Of a stretch of 64,000 nt of DNA, positions 1,291 through 59,206 are shown in pieces. Below the pieces are notes generated by a model that was not told where the DNA came from, did not search any database, and worked only from the letters and a program-made list of their open reading frames with translations. The position numbers and the translations under genes were made by a program. The stretch comes from Podarcis filfolensis (Eukaryota): assembly GCA_964270895.1 (NCBI GenBank), contig OZ185435.1; one strand, written 5' to 3'. How positions within the stretch are numbered: position 1 is the stretch's first letter; every line of letters starts with the position of its first letter.

Positions 1291-3880
1291 TTTACATAAC
1301 TACAAACATAGCAGAAGTCATAAACAATAAATAAAACACATCAAAACGTACACAACCAAATGGAGACAATTTCCACATAAATCGTAAGATCTAAGACTAA
1401 AGATACAACAATAATATCAATAACAGCAACAAGCTCTCTCAGCCCCCCATAAACAATACCCCAGCCCAAGAATCTGTTCAACAGCCTCAGTTTTTGTAGC
1501 TGGAGTCAGTCAGCACTCCACTCTCCCAGGCCAGATGGGAAAAGGCCAGCAAGGCAGGGTGCAGGATAGAAATGGATTGTAGTTTATGTCATGTGTACAC
1601 TACTTCCCCAAACAGCATCAGAGCTAAATGGCAGTTTGTATGCAGCCCTAGTGTCAGGAGCTGCTGGATCTGAATGCAGCTGCCCCATGTGGTAACCTAC
1701 TGAACTGCAGCTGGCAACCTTCTTGATGTCCTTGGACCAGTTCTACCCACTCAGGCTGACCCTTGGCTCCTCCCAGACAGGAAGGATGATAATGGGCTTC
1801 CTGTTGCAGCTCTGCTTGGCTTGAGCAATGCTGTGATGCGTTCCTGTATCTCTGGTTGTTCTTTGGCCTTGCATTCCTGTGTGCTTCTTGACCCAGTCTT
1901 CTCTTTGGGTTTATTCTCTAGTGTGAAATATGGAAAAATGCCAGACTTCTCTTATCTCAGGCTACCAGAAGGCACAATAGAGTTCACTCCACACTGTTGT
2001 AAAGAGAGTACTGGAAGGATGACTTAAAGTTGTTGTTACGAAGACAATTAGGTGCAGGCCAGTTTGTGAGAGACCAGGGCCACAACATTTGGCTCTGGTT
2101 TGCCCTTTGGTCTTGAGTTCTCCTTCAGTCCTGACTACTGCCTTGTCCTGTGGCCCCTGGCTTGCTTCAGACTGCTGTCTGTGGCCCAGCCTTGATACCT
2201 AACTCCCAAGTTGTCCTAATGTAGCCTTTTGTGCTTTCATTTTCCATGGGAAATTCGGGGAGGTGTGTGGACAGAGAAGAGAGACCAGGGAATTGCCCTT
2301 GACCTTTTCTATAAAGTAGGCTTTAGGCCAGGAGTGGGGAACTTGTGGTTTTTCAGAAGTTGTTGGACTCCCAATTCCCATCAGCCCCAGCTACTGCATA
2401 TAATGCATGTGCTCTGCCACTGAGCTATGCGCCTTCCCTATAGGAGGCAGCTGTAGCCTTCACACCAGAGATATTTTGCTAGAAATTGTTGGAGAGACGA
2501 TACTGAAACAGACGTATGCTGTGTGATACAGCAGCACCCTGATGTTCTTATGAATTGACTGAAAAATATTGTGTTTGAGGAAATAATACAATTTCTGTCT
2601 ATGACACTAGAACTCTGATGACCTATTTGCATGTGCAAATTATCATTTCATGTTAGGATAATCATCTGTTGAATATCTGTGTGACTGCTTCATTCTCAAC
2701 TGAGCTTTCTTCATTCCAGCTCACACCACCTCAGTTTTCTTCTCCACTGAATAAATTCCATTGTGTAACTATTCCTGCCTCCTCCATTTCTGAGTTTGTC
2801 ACCAGGAACCACCCTGCCATGCTCCGTTCTCAACTGCACATGAGCATACATGTCCACATGCATATAAGCACCCACTGCTTCTTTGATGGGGATTGCCATC
2901 AAAGAATGATGTGGGCCAGAAAATGGCCTTTAGGCGCATGACACAGTTCTACAGAACAGGTTTGGTGTGAATGGGAGAGACTGCCTGGAAGCTGTAGGCA
3001 AGCTGCTCATTGATGAAAAGCTGGGAATCAATGGGATAAGTAAGGAACAAAACAAGTTTCACCGGAACTGCAACAGTCTTTTCCAGGATGCCAGATTTTG
3101 CCATACTCTGTACCTGTCCTTTCTTGCCCATTTTCAATACTGCTCTTTTTACATGGCAGAATTACATTCGATTGTTGCTGGAAATGGTATAACATGTAGT
3201 AAATGGTATAGTAAAACTTACCTGCACCCTGACACCATTGTGACATTGTCCCAGTAAGAAGAGTGAGAATCACAGGGACTAAGGACTTTTAAAAAATGGG
3301 GGAATCCTCTCTTGTTTCTGAAGAAAGGGAGAAAGCTCTTGCATGCATGAAAAACACATCTTCCCATCCGTTCCATCCCTGGCACACGCACACACACTGT
3401 CATTCTCATCTCCCACCCTGCCAGTTTTCAAAATAGTCGCAAGTTTCTGCCAAAAGTTAATAAAGCAAACATATTTTGGACAACATCTATATTGCTATCA
3501 TTGACCATAAAAATACTTGGTGCATCGCCAAGTCCCCACAGCACTGCAGGGATTTTTTTTCTTTCTGTTTGTGTTTCTGGAAAGGCAATAATCCTTCTTT
3601 GGCTTTAGCTTTTCCACAGCCCTGGCGTTTCTTCATGATTCCTATCATGCTGTCCAATAGACAGACAGACAGACCTAACCCCAGACCTAAATCCAAAACA
3701 TACTATGAAAGTTGCATGCATTTGGGGGGGTGCCCTGTCCAGTGCTCCACATTTTAAGGAGGACACAGACAAACTGTTCTTACTCGTGAGGAAGGCAAGA
3801 AGAACGACAAGGGGTTTTGGAAAGCAAGTCCTGTGAGAAACAGGTAAAAGAAGTGGGTGTGTTTAACCTGGAGAAGACTT

Positions 3881-4258: not shown

Positions 4259-7037
4259 CCCCAGTTAAAAGAATTCTAAGTACCAAGGGAGTGTTACTAA
4301 CAGTCTGTTGTGTGCTGGGCTACATGAATGAAAAAACAGCAACTGTTACAAGATCAAGAAATCATGAAATTGGTAATACAGTACTGAATTGGAAAAGGAT
4401 TGATGTTATGAAGTTATGCAAAATTAATTTTAAGGCCCCCCACTTTCAAATATTTTGTCTAAAGCAACATCCTCTGGGTTATATGCAATGAAGTCATCCC
4501 ATTCATGCAAGGACTTCTACTTGTGCAGCAAAACTCTACCCCTGCCCTCTTTCCCCAACATACCCCTCCAAAATCCATTCTGGAAACCCTCTAGAGCAGA
4601 TTGTGAGGGTAGGCAAGGGAAGAGGGAGAGGAAGCTCTGCTGCAGAAGTCCTTGCCTGAAAAGGGCAAGTGCATTGGATGCAACCCACTGACTTTAATTG
4701 GACAACTTAGACAAAAAATAAATAAATGTCATGGGCTTTTATGGATTTTTTTTTAACTGTCTAAAGCTCAAAAGTCTGGGTTTTAAAAAGGCATCTGATT
4801 CAGCTCAGGAAGGAAGCCACAGCACAGACAACACAGCAAACATTTTACTGGAGCGTTCCATCCATCATTTTCAGGACTTTCCTAAGCTTTGGATGATAAG
4901 GAGATTCAATCTTGTAGGGGGACTTAATCCTCCCCAGTACAAAGCTTCAAGGAGAGAAAATGTCAGCTTGTAGACAATGTAAGCAGAGCAAGGAACCAAT
5001 GGCGAGACTATACTGGGACCACAGCTCCAATGTGGCAGCTATGTGGATCTTGCCATCTGCTTGTGAGTGTAATAAGCTGCTGTATGGTGGAAAGAACCGA
5101 GCCTTTGATTCCACCCTAGGAAGAATGCCAGATTCACTTGTGGTGAGGCAATGGACCATACTTGTTACAACTGTCCTTAATTTAGGCACCTGGCTGGTAG
5201 CCATAGGTGATAAGGGATTCCGTGCAGGTGGGCATGGATGCTGCCAGGGGAGGGATCACTCTGTTCCCCCTCTTTGCCCCACATGGCAACCAAGAGAGCC
5301 AGCAAAAGAGGGAATCCTTTTTCTTTGCACCAAGTCACGGAGCTCACCATTCTTCTTTGCCAGCCCACAGTAGGCAGGGTTTTTTTGTTTTTGTTTTTTT
5401 AAAGCCGTGTTAGTAACTTTTGTGGACTTCTTTCAAAGTCTGCCTTAAAAAAACCACCCCACACCCTTGGACTCTTGTCAATAATGGAAGGCAAACACCA
5501 AAACACTTGACAAAAATCGGGAGATGCAGGGCAATCATGCTCCGAGTGGCCACTTGAATGACAGAATGAAAAGGACTCTATTCCAGTCTTTAATGACTTC
5601 ATAAACTTATTCAGTAACACTGGCTTTTCTGCGTTCTCCTCAGGGCAAGGTGCCCAGCTGGTGTACATCGAACCCACAGCTCCAGCAAGTCCAGTCAAGC
5701 TACGCCGGTGACATCTGCTGGGGATCTATCCTTGTACTTGGAAACAGTTCAGTGCTACTTTGGTCTTGGTCAGCTTCCCAGGGCTTGTCAGGCAGCTGGA
5801 TAATAAGGCCTCAGCTGCACCACAAAACAGCTTTAGCCAGAAAGCTCGCTGTTTCCCTTCAAAGTGTATTACAACCCTTTCGGTTCGTTACTAGTGGCCA
5901 GTAACCTCGGCGGTCCAAAGGCCCACTCTGCCATCCATTCATGAAGCATGAAAATTCACCTCATGGGGCTGCTGGTTCAAACAACAGCACTTACAGAAAG
6001 ATAATTTCGCTTGAGCCCTAGAGGAAACTGCATAGCTGAGTCACATTAGGGGGAGGGAAGATGGTTGAGGACAGTGCTCTGTAAAAAAATATATATGGGG
6101 AAATCTGGAAGAGGAAGCCAGAAGCCCAAATATTTCCCTGAATAGAGCTGGGGAGGTCTAGACTCACATCTCTACTTGCCTATTCAGCTCCCAAGGTGAC
6201 CTTGGGAAAGGCACAGGTGCTACCAGTGTAACTTACCTACTTTTATTCTTAGGCAATTCTGTGAGAGAAGAGCTGTATATTTACCAGCTGGAGCTGTTTG
6301 GTGGAAGAGCAAGCTATAAACGCAATTAATAATAATTTGGAGTTACTGGTAAGAACGAGACAAACCCTTCCCTTTCTCTCTTTAGGCATATTTTGCATAG
6401 TGTGTGATTACCTTATATGCTGATGGAACTTGATGGCACAGAGACGGCTCAATATTTCCTCAGCAATTACACACTTGAGCATTCCTGTTTGTCCAGGTGA
6501 CAGAGACACCCGAGGCCTGTGGGTGGTTGTTTCCCTCTTCCCACCATGCATCTGGATAATCTCATCATGTCCTTCCCACCTGCAAGTCTTTCATTTCTGC
6601 ACCACTTTTTTTTTTGGCCTTGCTTAATCCCCTTTCGCTCAGATATTTGACTGAGTCAGCCTTTAACATGACTGTCAGGAAAGCCAAGGGAATAGGTCTT
6701 AATTAAGAGAGTTCATTTGATGTCGCTATGCGGTACGGCTTGTTTCCTGCAGTGGATTCTCTCCCAGATCCAGAGCAGAGCCATTGAATTGGCAATGTTG
6801 GTGTAGCTACGACGGGATGGTCTCAGGTTAGCTTCCTCCTTGCAAATTATGTGTGTGTCAAATTCATGAATCACCATGCTTGCAAATGGTTCTACATTAA
6901 AGGAAAGGACTGTGATGTTACACCTTGTTTTCTAACCCAGTCTGCAATGTTTTCTATGGCTACTTAATTGATTCCAAAGGGTAACTGCCACCACAATAAA
7001 AAAAACCTACCCTGCATTGTGCAGAAGGGGCCTCATG

Positions 7038-10661: not shown

Positions 10662-11324
10662 CTGTAAAATACAGTAGACAAAAGGGAGGCATTATATTAT
10701 TCCACAGAACAGTAAATTATAAACCAAACAATTCTATTCAGAGGGGGACAAAAGTATAATGTAAACCACATGGGTTTATCTTACTTTACACAAGTGACAA
10801 CATTCGAGGAGTGATTATAAAAACGGCAAGTTTTTAAAGAAGTCACTGTATATGTGATCATTTCATCAGGGCATGGGAGAAGAGTTTTAAAGTGTAGGTC
10901 GTCTGTCTGACTTTAGCATTCACTAGATCAAAGTACAGAAACCAGAGAAGATTGCTTTGTAAAGCTAGATCAATGCAGCAAAGCCCCATCAAAAGAATCG
11001 CCTTCCTGGCCACTTCAGTCCTTTGAACTGGGTGGGGGAACTGTGGCATTTCAAAGAGTCAACTTACAGGTGAATATGTGCCATTTGATGACTTGTAGTT
11101 GAACATATTCATCGCCTCCATTGAAAAGAAGCAGGTTTGAGATAGTGCCAGGTGATAGGAAAACTGTCAGACACATCATCCGTAGTCATCAGGTAATGAA
11201 CATGCCTGTGTGAATTCATCTCTCAGGCCTCTGCCAGTCATGACCCATCATGCCTCTAATAAAGCCCCCCCACTTCCACTAACCATACAGATACGAGCCT
11301 TGCTGCTGTTATCCACACTCTGGT

Positions 11325-11779
11325 TGTTACGAAAAAGGAGCAATGCTGCTGAGTGCTCCAGATGGCTGGAAAGCCAAACAGGATGTTGATGTTATGGGAC
11401 TGTACCGTGGGAACAAGGGACAGTCTATTATGTGCACTGAGCACCGGATGTTAGCTCAGAGTGTCACATGACCCTGTACTGGAAGTACATGGGTGGAGTT
11501 ATTCTCTCTCTGGCTGCTGATGTGAGAGGGTGCAGACACGTTTCTCTGCACTACTGGAAAGACAGAAATAAAGGCATGTAAATACATTTCTGTCTGTCTC
11601 TCTCCCCTCCCTGGGAGTGAGGGAGGAGGGATGGTTGTGTTCTTCTCACGTTGAGGAGAATCGGCCGATAGAGACCTCGCCTTGTCTTGCCGGGAGTCGC
11701 TGACGGGGAGGTCAACATGGAATCAAAGCCGGGCACCTGGAGAGTGCCAAATTCCTCTGACAAGGCTTGAGATTCAACA
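11325..11779 (+). repeat. 5' LTR of the Copia-type element
   Basis: TGTTACG...TTCAACA, contains AATAAA, near-identical to 14249-14703. Confidence 0.97.
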
Positions 11780-11781
11780 TA

Positions 11782-11799
11782 TGGTAGCAGAGGATGGTT
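11782..11799 (+). promoter_or_regulatory. Primer-binding site for initiator tRNA-Met (TGGTAGCAGAGGATGGTT)
   Basis: 18-nt complement of the vertebrate tRNA-iMet 3' end (AACCATCCTCTGCTACCA), 2 nt after the 5' LTR. Confidence 0.95.
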
Positions 11800-12292
11800 A
11801 TCTGATCCATGGGAATCAGCATGAGAGGTGAGAGGTTGATGGATCGTGTGCCATCCTCTGCACCAAGGAAAGAAGATAACGTCTGATCAGCTGAACAGAC
11901 GGCTGGACACCAAGAGGGGGTGTTTTCCAAGCAACGGAGCCCCAAAAAGGTATGCTGAATATCGGGCTAAAAGTGTGAATGCAGATTGATTTATTCTCTG
12001 GTTCACGAGAGCTGCGTTTGGAAAAACAGCTCTGAGAGCCTAGGCTTGCATACCAGGCATATTTGCGGTGAGATAAGAAAGAGAAGTATGCACAGTTGCT
12101 AAGCAACGACAGTCAGGACAGTGGAAAACTACTGACACCTGGGGCTGGCTCAGTCAGAGCCGGGAAAGCGAAAGTTGTTTTGACTTTGAGACAGCTTGGA
12201 GATTGCCTGCCTGAGAAAGGCAGAAAACAGCTCAAAAGGCAGCTTTTGGGATTTTACTAGCTCGAGTGAGAGAGCTGAGACTTGGATTCAAA

Positions 12293-14395
12293 ATGGATGC
12301 CAAGGACAGGGGGAGGGAAGAACGGAGTTCTAATTCCCCCACTGATGTTGCTACTGGAGAGGATGCTGTAGCTTTGAACGCTGTCCGATGTTACAATTGC
12401 GGACAGGCTGGGCATCTTCAGCGGAACTGCAAGAAGCCACGCCAGCCGAAAGGAGCGAAGGGCCGCTCAGCAAAGCCTGAGGCAGCAGGCAAAGGTCGTA
12501 CCAAGTCTTCGGTGAAACCTGCAAAGGCCCTGATGGCGAAAGGAACCACGCCAGATGTTGGACACTCGTTTGTGATCGATACGGGCTGTAATTTTCATAT
12601 GTCCCCACACAAGGCGCTCTTTTCGACGTTTAAGAAGCAAAGCTTCGCTGTGGAACAAGCCAACGGTCAGAAGCTGGAAGCGACCGGGGTTGGAACTGTG
12701 TATCTTAAGAGTCTGAACCTGACTATACACAATGTTTACTTGGTTCCTGAATTGAAGTTCAATCTGCTGAGTGTTTCGCAGATTGCAAAGAAAGGACTGA
12801 AACTGTCCTATGATGATAAGAGCTGCGAGATCTTCAAAGATGGAGAGTTATATCTTTCTGCCAGACAGAAAGATGGACTGTATTTGTTGACTTTTGACCA
12901 AAGTGATTACATGGAATGTAATTCTGAGTCTAACTTGATTTCTCTTGCAGGTGTGACCAAGACGAGCACCAAGAAGGTGGCCAGGGTCGACAGAGCATTT
13001 CAGCGGGTGTATGCTGATGTGATTGGTCCTCTAGAACCATCTAGAGGCAAAGCAAGATTTTATCTTGTGTGTGTAGATCATTTCTCTAACTTTGTCTGGG
13101 TTTATGTGTTAAAGAGGCCACAGGAAGCCTTGGAAAGGTTTCAGGAGTTTTGTGACAAGGTTAAAGATATGCATGATGCTAACATTGATTGTCTTTTGAC
13201 AGATGAGAAGCAGATTTTTCTTTTACAGGATTTCCAGAGGTTCCTGCACAAGAAAGGGATAAGACACAAGGTTGCTGTTTCAGCGGAAGCGTGGAACAGG
13301 GGTGTCTGTGTACGGGTGAACAAAGAATTGCAAAAGGGGATGAATGCGCAATTGCTTAGTTCACATCTGCCACATGAGTTCTGGGCGGAGTCACTCATGT
13401 CGTTTTGTCATGCGTGGGTGAGAAAGGTTTCAAAAGAGTTGGGAAGTTCTCCTTTTGAGAAACTGTTCCAGAGAAAACCTTCTGTTGCCCATTTCAAGGT
13501 TTTTGGGTCTCATGTGAGGACAGAAGCTCCAGGGGGAGTAAAGAATGCCAGAGGCATTTTTGTGGGATATGAAAAGGGTCTCTACAGAGTAATTTTGTCT
13601 GAATCTGGTCAGGTGATTCTCACAAAATTTCTAGAGAGTGCTCCTGAAAAGGAGAGAGTGATAGCACACACATTTCCCACAGAGGACGATTCAGATGATG
13701 ATGATGATTTCACAGAGTACAGTGGTACTGAGAGCGACAGTGATAGCTCAGAGAGCTCTGTTGTCACAGTCATTGAGAGGAAATCTCACACAACGGATAG
13801 ACCTTCACAGGTGAAGGTTGAACCACTGTTTACCATTGGAACTGGTTCTCCAAAGAGTCCTGAGACAGAACCAGTGAGCAGAGAGGATCAGCACCTCATA
13901 CGCAGGTCTGAGAGTGTCACAAAGGGTGAACCACCCAAAAGGTACTCAGAAGAGTATGCTAATTTAGCTGTTGCATGTGTTGCTGTTGTACACAACCGAG
14001 GACAGGTTGGAGCTGTGTCTAAGTCAGAGACAAAGACACAACAGAGAGTTGCTAGCCAAGGTAATGCAGATGCACTCATTCCTTGGAAGCTAGACAACCA
14101 GAGAGGTACACTGGGGAAACCAGTGGCGGGTAGTTCCAAGGGTGGAACTGAAACAACAGGGGAGTGTTATGTGTATAACAACTGTTTGTTTTCTTCTCTG
14201 GATCACGCTTTGCTTGCCGCAACATGCATTGATTCTTTTGGGGGAGGTTGTTACGAAAAAGGAGCAATGCTGCTGAGTGCTCCAGGTGGCTGGAAAGCCA
14301 AACAGGATGTTGATGTTATGGGACTGTACCGTGGGAACAAGGGACAGTCTATTATGTGCACTGAGCACCGGATGTTAGCTCAGAGTGTCACATGA
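12293..14395 (+). CDS. 700-aa Copia-derived polyprotein: CCHC zinc knuckle, aspartic protease, degenerate integrase core, acidic/Ser-rich tail. No capsid, RT or RNase H
   Basis: CYNCGQAGHLQRNC (12389-12430), FVIDTGCNFHM (DTG at 12578-12586), YADVIGP / LTDEKQIF / GVCVR integrase-like motifs. The last 49 codons lie in the 3' LTR. The track ORF starts at GTG 12266; the first ATG is at 12293. Confidence 0.88.
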   Translation: MDAKDRGREERSSNSPTDVATGEDAVALNAVRCYNCGQAGHLQRNCKKPRQPKGAKGRSAKPEAAGKGRTKSSVKPAKALMAKGTTPDVGHSFVIDTGCNFHMSPHKALFSTFKKQSFAVEQANGQKLEATGVGTVYLKSLNLTIHNVYLVPELKFNLLSVSQIAKKGLKLSYDDKSCEIFKDGELYLSARQKDGLYLLTFDQSDYMECNSESNLISLAGVTKTSTKKVARVDRAFQRVYADVIGPLEPSRGKARFYLVCVDHFSNFVWVYVLKRPQEALERFQEFCDKVKDMHDANIDCLLTDEKQIFLLQDFQRFLHKKGIRHKVAVSAEAWNRGVCVRVNKELQKGMNAQLLSSHLPHEFWAESLMSFCHAWVRKVSKELGSSPFEKLFQRKPSVAHFKVFGSHVRTEAPGGVKNARGIFVGYEKGLYRVILSESGQVILTKFLESAPEKERVIAHTFPTEDDSDDDDDFTEYSGTESDSDSSESSVVTVIERKSHTTDRPSQVKVEPLFTIGTGSPKSPETEPVSREDQHLIRRSESVTKGEPPKRYSEEYANLAVACVAVVHNRGQVGAVSKSETKTQQRVASQGNADALIPWKLDNQRGTLGKPVAGSSKGGTETTGECYVYNNCLFSSLDHALLAATCIDSFGGGCYEKGAMLLSAPGGWKAKQDVDVMGLYRGNKGQSIMCTEHRMLAQSVT
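14238..14248 (+). promoter_or_regulatory. Polypurine tract of the Copia-type element
   Basis: TTTGGGGGAGGT directly before the 3' LTR. Confidence 0.8.
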
Positions 14396-14703
14396 CCCTG
14401 TACTGGAAGTACATGGGTGGAGTTATTCTCTCTCTGGCTGCTGATGTGAGAGGGTGCAGACACGTTTCTCTGCACTACTGGAAAGACAGAAATAAAGGCA
14501 TGTAAATACATTTCTGTCTGTCTCTCTCCCCTCCCTGGGAGTGAGGGAGGAGGGATGGTTGTGTTCTTCTCACGTTGAGGAGAATCGGCCGATAGAGACC
14601 TCGCCTTGTCTTGCCGGGAGTCGCTGACGGGGAGGTCAACATGGAATCAAAGCCGGGCACCTGGAGAGTGCCAAATTCCTCTGACAAGGCTTGAGATTCA
14701 ACA
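14249..14703 (+). repeat. 3' LTR of the Copia-type element
   Basis: Matches the 5' LTR except CCAGGT versus CCAGAT near its start. Confidence 0.97.
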
Positions 14704-14942
14704 CTGGTAACCTGGTAGTTGAATTACTGCAATGCATTATATATATGAAGCTGCTTTAGAAAATGGCTTGGAAACTTCACTTGGTCAAAACAGGGCAGCT
14801 AGGTTATTACTGGAGAGTGGTAAATATGATTGTATTACAGCAGTGCTCCATCATTTGGAAGCCGGCTAGAGTGACTGGGGCAACCTAGTTAGATGGATGG
14901 GGTACAAAATAAAAATAATTAATATTAGCAGCAGCAGCAGCA

Positions 14943-24850: not shown

Positions 24851-24873
24851 TTCCCAGCCCAGGAATGACTGTA

Positions 24874-25115
24874 CAGTGGTACCTTGGGTTAAGTACTTAA
24901 TTCGTTCCGGAGGTTCGTACTTGACCTGAAACTGTTCTTAACCTGAAGCACCACTTTAGCTAATGGGGCCTCCTGCTGCTGCCGCGCTGCGGGAGCCCAA
25001 TTTCTGTTCTTATCCTGAAGCAAAGTTCTTAACATGAAGCACTCTTTCTGGGTTAGCGGAGTCTGTAACCTGAAGCGTATGTAACCTGAAGCGTATGTAA
25101 CCCGAGGTACCACTG
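24874..25115. mobile_element. Tc1/mariner-type MITE
   Basis: TIR CAGTGGTACCT(C/T)GGGTT with TA flanks. Confidence 0.9.
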
Positions 25116-25359
25116 TAGTTGTTGAACAAATCGCTACTGGTTAAAGGTACTTCTTGCCACTGTGGCTACCTGAACCCCCAGTGACAGAGCTGGATCCAAA
25201 AGCACCCCCCAAATTTCTTGGACACAGGAACAACTCACCCATAGTGTCTCTGTCTTGCCAGGATTCAAGCTCATATTACAGATCCCTTGGTTGGTAGGTA
25301 GTTAGGAAGTTACCCAACAACTTCCTGTTTCGTTTCTAAATTCTGGTAAACTTCTGCAC

Positions 25360-45875: not shown

Positions 45876-47310
45876 TAGTTTAGCACAGGTTTTCACTTCT
45901 TCTGTGCCAGCTGAAGCAACAACGTAGGGCCAGGCTGCACAATGTTCAGAGGGGAGTTATTGCTCATTCCCCCATGCCCTTGCAAAACCTGCTGGGGCAA
46001 GCCTACAGATCAATGTACAGGATAAAGAAACTTCTTCCATCAAAATATCACATCACAAAAAGGGTATGTTGTTAGCTTGAAATTCTGTGAAAAGGAAATG
46101 CCAAATGGATCCATTTAGTCACAATATCAACTGATTTGACCAATGACGTCCAATCAAAAAATGCTCTAATTATACACGCTTCATTATATAAGTTGATTAC
46201 ATAAGGAGTTTGCCATACTGGAAGTTATATAATTTCTGCCACTTGCAGGGTGGCGTATGTTGCAAATTGTGCTAATTTTTTTGTAGGTTGGAATGCAAAT
46301 CCTTTGCAGTCTGAGAACACTGTGCCAAAACATCAATTCTAATTTTGGTTCTGATAAAACCAAAGTCTTTTTTTTTCATTCTGTTTTGTAGAGGTTTTGA
46401 AAAGCAAAGTATGACATAGCGTGTTTGCTGCATATTCAACTTTTGTGAGGCAGCAAAACAGGATGCAAGGCAAAGCCAGGGGTGAAGGAGAGGCTATGGT
46501 CAGAAACAAAGCAGCATAGGCTTTAACTGAAACAAAATAAAAAAATTCCTTCCAGGAGTACCTTAGAGACCAACTAAGTTTGTCTAAGGTGCTACTAGAA
46601 GGAATTTTTTTATTATGTTTTGACTACGGCAGACCAACATGGCTACCTACCTGTAAATAGGCTATAACTGTTAAACACTTTCTAAAATACCTTGTCTGAG
46701 AATACTATCAAAAAGGGGTGTGGTCAGCCTGCAATTTCCAAAAAGATAAGTTCCAAGACTGAAATTGTATGGAAACCCCTATACAATGAAGCCTTGTCCA
46801 TCAGTTTTAAATATATGAGGACAAACAGAAGTTGCTCAGTGACTGTACATACTTGTATGTATTTTTCTGTATTATATAATATTTCAAATCTGTTTCTTTA
46901 AATACAAGGCTTTGCCAAGCATGGAAGGGGATGTAATGAATGGATGTTGTTAAAAGGAATGTCTGCATGGCTGCAGGATTGCCAACAGCAGCAAGAGATT
47001 TCTTTTACTTATGCCGCTGGGATAAAGCCAAGCTCTAACTTTATATCCGGCTACTTATTGTTTGGGAACAGGCACACACTATATAGTTATTATTTAAATC
47101 AAAATATTTTTTACAAAACTTGTTTCTGCTTTCATTCTCTTAAAGAACTAACTAATTAAGAAGTGCCCAGATTGACAGCTGGATCACTTCTAGCTCAGAC
47201 AAGTAGCTAGAGAGCCATTTTCAGTTGTAACAGCACTGCTAATATTGGTCATATCTAGTATATCTGGATGATAAAGTCTGGAAGGAAGGCCTGTTCATTA
47301 ATTCTAAGTA

Positions 47311-47552
47311 CAGTGGTACCTCAGGTTAAGTACTTAATTCGTTCTGGAGGTCCGTTCTTAACCTGAAACTGTTCTTAACCTGAAGCACCACTTTAGCTAA
47401 TGGGGCCTCCTGCTGCTGCCGCGTTGCCGGAGCACGATTTCTGTTCTCATCCTGAAGCAAAGTTCTTAACCTGAAGCACTATTTCTGGGTTAGCGGAGTC
47501 TGTAACCTGAAGCGTATGTAATCTGAAGCGTATGTAACCTGAGGTACCACTG
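47311..47552. mobile_element. Tc1/mariner-type MITE, same family as 24874-25115
   Basis: TIR CAGTGGTACCTCAGGTT, TA flanks, nearly the same internal sequence. Confidence 0.9.
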
Positions 47553-49203
47553 TATGTACAGACAAGCTGAAGTTGTCCAGAATGCACACAGCCTCCTTGA
47601 CACAAACCTGTGCCTGCCACAGGCTGAGCTGGCCATACAAAGTCAATCTGAGGTCCCTTTGAGTCACAGGAGCAAAGTGCCTCCCAGGGACTGACACTTT
47701 CTAGAGGGAACTGTCTCATCCATAGTTCGCTGCCTAGAGGCTATATAGAGGAACAAGGAAGGGCTGGATCAGGGATGGTGCACTGGGGCCCTCCAGAAGT
47801 TGTTTGGCTCCTGCTTCTGTCAGTCACAGCCAGCACATGGCCAATGGTAGGAGATGATGCAACATCTGGAGCGCCACAGGTTCTCCATCCTTGGGCTAAA
47901 TAAGGGCATGCCAACAACAAGGGAGGGAATGTGTCAGCAAGTAGCCCACTGAATGCAGAGGCAGATGTAAACAGAATGTGTGAATCAACCTGGAGTAGCT
48001 ACTTCCCTCTGGGTCCATATGCCTCACCTCTCCCATGATCGTGTATCCTGCATTCATACTATTTCGGACTACGAAATGTAGTTTAATTGTATTTAACACA
48101 TAACTAATCTATAGTAAGTGAACATGAATAGGTGTATCCCAAACAGTGGAACATTAGGCACTCTGAAGGGTTGTAAGAAGCAATGCCCACAGGCGTTTCA
48201 TTAACATTTACCATTTTGTCCAAAGAGCAGGAGTCATGTCATCTATTGCTCATGACATTCCTTCAGACAACTGAGTTTCAATGATTAATTGTTTGGTGAT
48301 AGCAAATGCCAATGTGCCTCAGGATAAAACTGGCTTTCTCAATCAATCCAACAATTTATTGTGTATAGCCAAAGGCATTTACAATGAACAGCAGAGGGCA
48401 AAAGCAAGGCTGAAATCACACTGGCTTTCTGAAGCACGTCTTTATTATCCCGAACTGTTGAGGAAAGGCTAAGGAAGCTTTAATTGAAAAAAATGATCAT
48501 GCGCTACTTGAGAATTCCCCATGGTTCCTGGCTGGTAGCTACTGTAGGCAGAGAAATGAGTTTGATAGTATCTTGGCCCTAGCAAGGCAATTCTTGTTTT
48601 CTGATTACTGTTGTGGAACTTGTATATTCCCCTTGAGCAGAATGTTGGGACTGTTATTCAGCCCAAGGGCTACATTCCCTTCTGGACAACCTTCTGGGAT
48701 CCACAGACCAATGGTGGCTGGGGCCAGAGGCAAAAGTGGGCAGTGCAATAAACATGAATGCTATCTTTGCGTAGTAGCCTCATTTCCACACACGCACACA
48801 CACACAATTCTCCATCCTGTTGAGCAAGTAGGGCCATCAGAGTTGAAGGACACTTTCCAGCCAACCCGAAGCACTCAAAGAGCGGTGCTCTGAGGAGAGT
48901 CTTGAGGGCTAGATAAACCAGACTAGAGGGTCACATTTGACCCCAGACCTGGTCTAGAGAGCACTATGTAGTGAATATAGCAGATAGGATACAACAGCTT
49001 AGGTTGTGCAAAGACCTAACATAATTAGAAAGCTGAGGCCAATGTACTCTTTTCACAAACCATTGTGTTTTTTGGGTGGGTGTATTCTGCAACATGACCT
49101 TGATGTAATAATAGTGCACTAGGAATGGGTTTATACTGGGCCATACACATGCCATTCCCGTTTATCAGTTGTTCCATTATACTTCCCCGATGTTATTACA
49201 GTA

Positions 49204-57330: not shown

Positions 57331-58671
57331 TCTTTTATTGCTGGTTTTGCTTTGTTTGTTTTACGTCTGATGTCTCAGAATAGTTTATATCTTTCTCTTT
57401 CCTTTCCCTTGGTGAGCTTTATTGTATGCGCTCGTAAACTTCCTGCTTTGTGGTGGGTGCTCTGGGAAAGGACCGGGGCACCAACGTTGCCATTTTTCCT
57501 ATAAGACCCCAGTGCCTCTGAATACCAGTCGCTGGGGGTGAATTGGGGGCGGGGGACAACCGTGGTAGCCAGGGTACTATTGCCCTCATATCCTACTTCC
57601 CAGGAGGTATCTGGTTGGCCACTGTGGCCAATAGGAAACTGGAGGAGATTGGTCCTTGGTCTGATCCATTAGGGCTCTTTTTATGCTCTTGTCTTCTGGA
57701 TGAGACCAAGATGTGGGTAGCCCAGCCCCAAGGGTCAAGTGGGGTGGTCTCAAGCAAGCAGTGACCTTCCGTCCTTCTGCTCCTGCGTGTGTGCCAATAT
57801 CAAGTAATCGGAGATTGCCTCCGAACGTGTTCCGGTTTGTGTGGGAATGTGTAAACATCATTTACAACACAGTGCCAGTTTGCGCATTTGATGTGGGGTG
57901 ATTAATCTCAATGTGGAACATTTATAACATCATGCCGGATGGTGGTTAAATATACAAGACAGAGAAGCCGACATTGTGTAATGAAAGCTGGAGCATAGGG
58001 GGCAGGGGAGATAACTCGGGAAAGAAGACATTATATTGATTCTGGATCATTGCTTGATATTCTCCTGCCCGCCTACACAACATCCACTTCTGTGCTGTCA
58101 GAGTTCCTCTTTCTAATGCTTTGGAGCAACATGCTTTCAGGCTGGCTCTTAGAAGGCAGCTACAGCTGCACCCTGAACTGATGGGGACTCTCCACAGCCA
58201 GAGTTACAGCTTTGTCTACAAGTGATGTTAGGAATTAAAATTATTACAATTATTGAATAATTATTCAAGAACTCCAAAAGAGCTACAGCTCACAAACAAT
58301 GTCGTCGTTTCCCAGGGATGAGAGCTTCCTCTTGCAAGCACTTAAAGCTACTTTTAATAATCAGACAGCTCCCCTGAATATTTCAATTAATAATGCCACA
58401 TTTCCCCTTCATTGTGACTTTCCCCAGGCATAAGGTATATAACTGCTTGCTTTCTCGTTCCTATATAATCTTACTGCTCATATATGGATATATACTTTGG
58501 CGTGTTTTCACAATATGAGGAACTTTATAATTCTAACAAGCAACTTGCTGCTTTCTTCATTTCAGTTGGGGACCAACCTGTTTATGGTTTCTACTTGAAT
58601 TCTTCTTCTGAATCTGCAACCTGATTTTTTTTTAAAAAAAGTTCTACAAGTTCAGCAGTGAGTTTCAAATA

Positions 58672-58912
58672 CAGTGGTACCTCTAGTTACGAACTTAATT
58701 CGTTCTGGAGGTCTGTTCTTAACCTGAAACTGTTCTTAACTAGAGGCGTGCTTTCGCTAATGGGGCCTCTTGCTGCCACTGCACCGCTGGCACACGATTT
58801 CTGTTCTCATCCTGGGGCAAAGTTGTCAACTTGTGGTAACTCTTCCAGGTTAGTGGAGTTTGTAACCTGAATCATTTGTAACCTGAGGCGTTTGTAACTC
58901 GAGGTACCACTG
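58672..58912. mobile_element. Tc1/mariner-type MITE
   Basis: TIR CAGTGGTACCTC with TA flanks. Confidence 0.85.
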
Positions 58913-59206
58913 TAATCGATTACTTACTCTCTTCTAATTTTGATAAGAATAACAATTTGGTCCAGTTTTCCATTCAGATTTGATTTGACACCTCTGGAGC
59001 ATGCAAGCTTGCTTCTGTTCAGCATGCACACTTGAACGGCTTCATTACCACCCTTCAAAGGATTTTGCATATGAACTTGCCATTCTACCTTTTTGTCTTC
59101 TCTCAGTAGGCTAGATCTTCTATGCCCTGCTGTAAATCTGAGCTGTCCTGCTGAGGGTTTAGAGTCTAGAGCCCATCTGTTCTTCCATATTTCAGATTTG
59201 GATGCC

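Follow-up and report, generated by a model that had tools for sequence, protein, structure and literature searches.

The window, the whole 64,000-nt stretch of Podarcis filfolensis DNA analyzed here, contains a young 3.4-kb Ty1/Copia derivative without reverse transcriptase (RT). Its two LTRs form a TG...CA pair flanked by a 5-bp target-site duplication; a primer-binding site (PBS) for tRNA-iMet adjoins the 5′ LTR, and the 3′ LTR is preceded by a polypurine tract (Table 1). The aligned LTRs are 99.8% identical, with one mismatch in 455 nt. The 2.5-kb interior contains one intact ORF, in which the zinc knuckle, Pol_BBD, rve and SH3_retrovirus domains follow the copia order; the protease is a copia barrel, and RT is missing. 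Judged by this coding content, the element appears to be a non-autonomous Copia derivative.

Table 1. Features of the Copia derivative and its leader (positions in the window).
Feature	Positions	Strand	Basis
5′ target-site duplication CTGGT	11320–11324	+	Read directly; same 5 bases after the 3′ LTR
5′ LTR, 455 nt, TGTTAC...TTCAACA	11325–11779	+	Repeat family D2; alignment to 3′ LTR
TA spacer, LTR to PBS	11780–11781	+	Read directly
PBS, perfect 18-nt complement of tRNA-iMet nt 59–76 including CCA	11782–11799	+	Alignment; identical in L001 and L002
Decayed PBS extension, putative antisense remnant of tRNA-iMet nt ~42–58, GATCCAT kept	11800–11822	+	Alignment to reverse complement of nt 42–76
Hairpin loop region	11823–11830	+	Sequence, RNAfold
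Sense copy of tRNA-iMet nt 42–76 ending in ACCA (anti-PBS arm)	11831–11865	+	Pairs with 11782–11812
Leader block conserved between subfamilies (85% identity)	11946–12010	+	Alignment of window element and L001
Intact ORF, 700 aa, no RT; extends into 3′ LTR	12293–14395	+	Zinc knuckle, protease barrel, integrase core, SH3
Polypurine tract GGGGGAGG	14240–14247	+	Read directly
3′ LTR	14249–14703	+	Repeat family D2; alignment to 5′ LTR
3′ target-site duplication CTGGT	14704–14708	+	Read directly

The ORF product is closest to proteins of Podarcis lilfordi, P. muralis and Zootoca vivipara, in line with a lacertid host. When 1.84 billion representative proteins were searched, five lizard-family proteins only were returned, and no relative above ~35% identity outside the RT-less lineages described below. 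The ten further protein hits whose source was looked up are from arthropods, fungi, plants or unnamed contigs, and none is from a lizard. Neither the first 200 residues nor a minus-strand ORF that spans the hairpin gave a match in protein searches.

Four lacertid Copia lineages (the window element, L001, L002 and L004) encode gag-PR-IN and lack RT, and a copia-type gag was found in each of L001, L002 and L004. Besides the ORF in the window, the RT-less coding regions span positions 5265–7764 of L001, 8001–10610 of L002 and 450–2987 of L004. Three of these four lineages are young elements of 3.2–4 kb; L004 is represented by a collapsed contig, which gives no measure of age. L001 is a related element on another chromosome, in P. 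lilfordi, and represents a second young subfamily, with 81% identity to the window element in the coding part and 72–74% in the LTR. Its own LTRs are 99.6% identical (two mismatches in about 458 nt, the 3′ LTR being truncated). L002, an element of Zootoca, is more distant (44% protein identity), and its LTRs are identical over the 300 nt compared.

Two bases after the 5′ LTR lies an 84-nt feature that reads as an imperfect inverted repeat built from the tRNA-iMet 3′ half (nt ~42–76), in which the left arm corresponds to an extended PBS and the right arm to a CCA-ended sense copy. The sequence-only reading had given the PBS and the sense segment correctly, in coordinates and in letters. It had also counted 30 of 35 tRNA positions as matching in the sense segment; 30 matches are indeed obtained, over 36 columns, when two indels are allowed (a base inserted within the T-loop part, and a missing T72), and the ungapped match to nt 42–76 is 21/35. 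The reference used for these alignments was the established vertebrate tRNA-iMet sequence, and a CCA-ended tRNA-iMet retrocopy on a metagenome contig (L121) agrees with it at 34 of the last 35 nt. At the junction of loop and sense arm, GAGAGGT is duplicated in tandem (11823–11829 and 11830–11836), and L001 has a single copy.

The outer border of the inverted repeat is exactly TGGT/ACCA, with no complement of U5 beyond it, and the inner borders of both arms lie at tRNA nt 41/42. The tRNA portion present in the sense arm is limited to nt 42–76, and the cloverleaf with a 5′ half and promoter boxes that marks a tRNA gene is not found. ARAGORN found no tRNA gene, and Rfam gave no tRNA match within 11300–12400. 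A tRNA gene, a SINE, a Pol III unit and a tRNA retropseudogene were all rejected as identities of the segment, the 5′ half being absent and the B-box part altered.

In the window element, L001 and L002, 32–33 of 35 positions of the PBS arm agree with the reverse complement of tRNA nt 42–76. The counterpart of the decayed extension is well preserved in both relatives: L001 has the same perfect 18 nt and an extension arm at 33/35, and in the L002 leader an 11-nt insert separates the 18-nt PBS from a well-preserved complement of tRNA nt 41–58. In the 64-kb window the 16-nt PBS core occurs exactly only once, and its only nearby partner, with three mismatches, is the sense arm. In each of the three lineages the PBS agrees fully with tRNA-iMet over 18 nt and no further. 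The base at position 19, which faces m1A58, varies among them (T, A or G), and in two of the lineages the match breaks off at the m1A58 position. Perfect identity thus stops where a modified tRNA halts plus-strand copying, as is classically seen when a PBS is renewed every cycle by copying of the modified tRNA as far as m1A58. This pattern points to ordinary priming by tRNA-iMet.

RNAfold predicts a hairpin whose basal 4 bp (TGGT/ACCA) are set off by a bulged A from a 12-bp helix, followed by helices of 2 and 8 bp, with a free energy of −43.9 kcal/mol (z −5.8; 0 of 200 shuffles fold as well). The hairpin is retained in both the MFE and the centroid structures of the 541-nt leader context. Alignment and folding together bear out the earlier proposals that the segment is derived from tRNA-iMet, ends exactly at the CCA and pairs with the PBS. 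The stem had been proposed at that stage as 4+11+7 bp, with the same TGGT/ACCA pairing.

The PBS arm of the window element is predicted to pair more tightly with the 3′ half of the real tRNA (−50.0 kcal/mol) than with its own sense arm (−43.1 kcal/mol), and the difference is larger in L001 (−60.6 versus −28.1 kcal/mol). The predicted net ddG for annealing of full tRNA-iMet is −35 kcal/mol for the hairpin-less L002, −28 kcal/mol for L001 and −9 kcal/mol for the window element. Primer annealing is therefore predicted to remain favorable despite the window stem, with a gain reduced from about −35 to −9 kcal/mol. Such a reduction leads one to expect slower or gated primer loading, and the stem should slow or gate this step in the window element.

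The sense arm is a family trait and not confined to one insertion, since L001 carries a homologous arm at the same place. This arm is shorter and more degenerate than that of the window element (24 matches to the tRNA) and is separated from the PBS arm by only 3–5 nt; it still folds onto the PBS, at −34.5 kcal/mol, with a margin over shuffles that is slight (z −1.9). L001 retains T72 and lacks A73, whereas the window copy retains A73 and lacks T72. These complementary losses indicate a common ancestor nearer to the true tRNA 3′ end. In L002, the sense arm is absent and the fold is not significant. Comparison of the three leaders suggests that the ~35-nt extended PBS is ancestral and that the sense arm was gained later, within one lineage. 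The feature is tRNA-derived and lineage-specific. One argument of the sequence-only reading does not survive the comparison. It had held that AGAGGT in the sense arm has no partner in the PBS arm, and that a simple inverted duplication of the PBS was thereby disfavored; the partner is present in the 33/35 arms of L001 and L002 and was lost in the window copy only, so the argument fails. A separate observation concerns L002, in which a second, partly altered PBS and extension, including the family-specific insert, is found after the 3′ LTR (10856–10900). It could reflect elements in tandem, a recombination product, or the end of an aberrant cDNA.

Several known systems share part of this arrangement. 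In Tf1, the PBS matches no tRNA and pairs with the first 11 nt of the transcript, and a cut by RNase H makes the primer. Tf1/sushi-type self-priming elements resemble the window element in that a segment of RNA encoded by the element pairs with the PBS in cis. In the window element, however, the partner is tRNA-derived and lies 32 nt downstream of the PBS rather than at the transcript 5′ end, and the PBS is a perfect tRNA-iMet site. The extended or bipartite tRNA-iMet binding of Ty1 and Ty3 and the PBS-containing stems and tRNA-like element of the HIV-1 and RSV leaders are similar in two respects: leader sequence beyond the 18-nt PBS pairs with, or mimics, the primer, and part of the PBS is already paired when the RNA is free. 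The extra boxes in these four systems differ from the window arm in being short, antisense, or mimics of the anticodon arm, and to our knowledge none of the four has a CCA-ended sense copy of the primer 3′ half. The literature searched contained no description of such a copy beside a PBS.

Drosophila copia was reportedly shown by Kikuchi et al. in 1986 to be primed by a tRNA-iMet half that is cut in the anticodon loop. Two points of likeness are found here: in L004, the fourth RT-less lizard lineage, a copia-type internal site replaces the 3′-end PBS, and the arms in the window end at nt 41/42, near such a cut. The window element differs from Drosophila copia in that it uses the tRNA 3′ end, whereas copia uses the 5′ half. 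The Logan contig of L004 (positions 90–115 and 3729–3766) represents a collapsed element in circularly permuted form, and its leader contains GGTTATGGGCCCAG, a complement of the tRNA-iMet anticodon stem-loop as in the half-tRNA priming of Drosophila copia. The PBS extension of ~35 nt, conserved in three RT-less Copia lineages and ending where a cut in the anticodon loop would free a 3′ half of the tRNA, raises the idea that these Copia elements bind, or are primed by, a tRNA half.

In the fungal GalEa elements, which also belong to Copia, the 5′ LTR is followed at once by a conserved hairpin, a PBS is lacking, and the mechanism is described as unknown (PMC5445492). Their Conserved Hairpin Site consists of conserved 9-bp arms, of which the first is palindromic, and a variable loop, without complementarity to a tRNA (PMC5445492). 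The window element shares with GalEa a hairpin immediately 3′ of the 5′ LTR. It differs in having a classical PBS and arms of about 22–35 bp that consist of tRNA-iMet sequence; the 9-bp palindromic first arm and the conserved A/A mismatch of GalEa are not found.

We consider the hairpin to be most likely a tolerated passenger of aberrant reverse transcription, lying over a PBS that is still served by cellular tRNA-iMet (probability roughly 0.6). A single origin of the right arm, in an ancestor of the RT-less lacertid Copia lineage, is most likely. By one route, plus-strand strong-stop synthesis would have continued through the primer to nt ~42 and then folded back onto displaced PBS RNA, the 5′ end of which would have been set by RNase H at the U5/PBS border. 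By the other, RT would have switched template onto a CCA-ended 3′ tRNA half. The two routes are inseparable, since the tRNA has the same sequence as the complement of the PBS extension. The element would still be primed by the cell's own tRNA-iMet, and in its RNA the repeat would fold into a stem that occludes the PBS and needs a chaperone of the Gag/NC type to be melted. Against this reading, it is unlikely that a 22-bp stem over the PBS is strictly neutral. The feature illustrates the degree of PBS occlusion that an LTR element tolerates.

Alternatively, the stem may be kept by selection as a gate or shield of the PBS. It would hide the PBS in nascent or cytoplasmic transcripts from host factors that read this site, such as 3′ tRNA fragments or pre-tRNA-guided heterochromatin, or it would serve the timing of primer loading, or the dimerization or packaging of the non-autonomous RNA; the real tRNA-iMet would prime after Gag chaperones open the stem. 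We regard this as a real but less likely alternative. Identity between the window element and L001 is 100% in the 18-nt PBS, 49% in the sense arm and 49–58% in the poorly conserved U5 and leader, and the sense arm thus seems to diverge about as fast as its poorly conserved flanks. The conserved block farther downstream in the leader (Table 1) may be a packaging or dimerization signal; the leader around it is 39–58% identical between the subfamilies. In addition, the apical third of the hairpin has decayed in both copies, the L001 hairpin is marginal over shuffles, and the related Zootoca lineage copes without one.

Other observations favor selection. Both versions of the hairpin occur in recently active lineages, which are diverged from each other. 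All four changes in the T-stem helix of L001 turn Watson-Crick pairs into G-U (a post-hoc count, roughly p 0.02). Pairing kept in this way is possible only on the RNA plus strand, and these changes hint at selection on RNA pairing. In RNAalifold with the two sequences the T-stem part is misaligned, and the informative pairs are the basal 13 only. The arguments from rate and covariation rest on the two hairpin-bearing copies that can be read base by base. Thousands of contig pieces from the runs of several organisms align to the window element. In two other species the contig depth of the bin holding the PBS and hairpin equals that of U5, and the next 350 nt fall 5–50 fold; the level depth is compatible with constraint. 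Among the best-supported variants in the contig runs (40 of 237 substitutions and 12 of 88 indels) none lies within 11726–11943, which does not amount to proof of conservation. PBS-directed silencing by the host was reportedly described by Schorn et al. in 2017. Such silencing is known in flies, where it acts through pre-tRNA (PMC13537249). The conserved hairpin right after the 5′ LTR in GalEa (PMC5445492), and the short PBS stems of ERV-like elements with the same PBS, also agree with a selected gate. Under selection, the stem would count as the first known case of a tRNA-half mimic built into an element to gate its PBS, and as a candidate counter-measure against PBS-directed silencing.

It is distinctly unlikely that the anti-PBS arm is a functional, genome-encoded mimic of the primer half, be it as a shield that protects the PBS of a parasitic, RT-less Copia RNA from PBS-directed host silencing until the stem is opened by Gag, or as a tRNA-independent primer freed by a cut at the CCA. 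Were such a mimic real, it could mark an intermediate stage, still with tRNA sequence, on the way to the PBS-less hairpin of the fungal GalEa Copia elements.

An origin at the DNA level, by inverted duplication of the extended PBS or as a chance palindrome, independent of tRNA and reverse transcription, would make the sense arm simply the reverse complement of the 35-nt PBS extension that the family already carries, and fold-back repair can create palindromes. We hold such an origin to be improbable. The outer border at exactly TGGT/ACCA without a U5 complement argues for a primer-defined unit rather than a random DNA duplication, which would also have ignored the limits of the primer unit, observed here as inner borders that both lie at tRNA nt 41/42.

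The proposal of the sequence-only reading that the leader is cut after 11865 and its paired ACCA end extended over U5-R, with no need of a tRNA, suits the geometry, in which ACCA lies on TGGT exactly at the position of the tRNA 3′ end, and has precedents in Tf1 self-priming and the GalEa hairpin in place of a PBS, but it is hardly credible given the 18-nt identity of the PBS to the real tRNA in three lineages, with the m1A58 end in two, the different 1-nt arm deletion of each subfamily, neither of which was transferred into the PBS, the tighter pairing of the PBS arm with the tRNA, and the lack of an evident cleavage signal.

The pattern of PBS, gap and anti-PBS gave no match in metagenome or viral contigs. 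A scan of metagenome contigs for the 18-nt PBS returned mostly one recurrent, GC-rich sequence of bacterial appearance, including in samples labelled as human gut. The long sense arm is absent from all 36 LTR-like metagenome hits with the same 18-nt PBS, many of which have short stems of 7–13 bp on the PBS; two that were scanned among these hits, L065 and L122, are ERV-like, with RT-RNase H-IN. The same 18-nt iMet PBS occurs in L008, L010, L065, L122 and about 30 other metagenome loci, with an animal host. In many of these metagenome elements part of the PBS is repeated in tandem, and PBS nt 5–11 form a short stem with a downstream CCCTGC. L076, L102 and L121 carry CCA-ended antisense copies of most of tRNA-iMet, which are either retrocopies or very long PBS-like tracts. 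Elsewhere in the window, a different dispersed repeat is present in three copies (24871–25117, 47308–47554 and 58668–58914), 63–94% identical to a reference copy.
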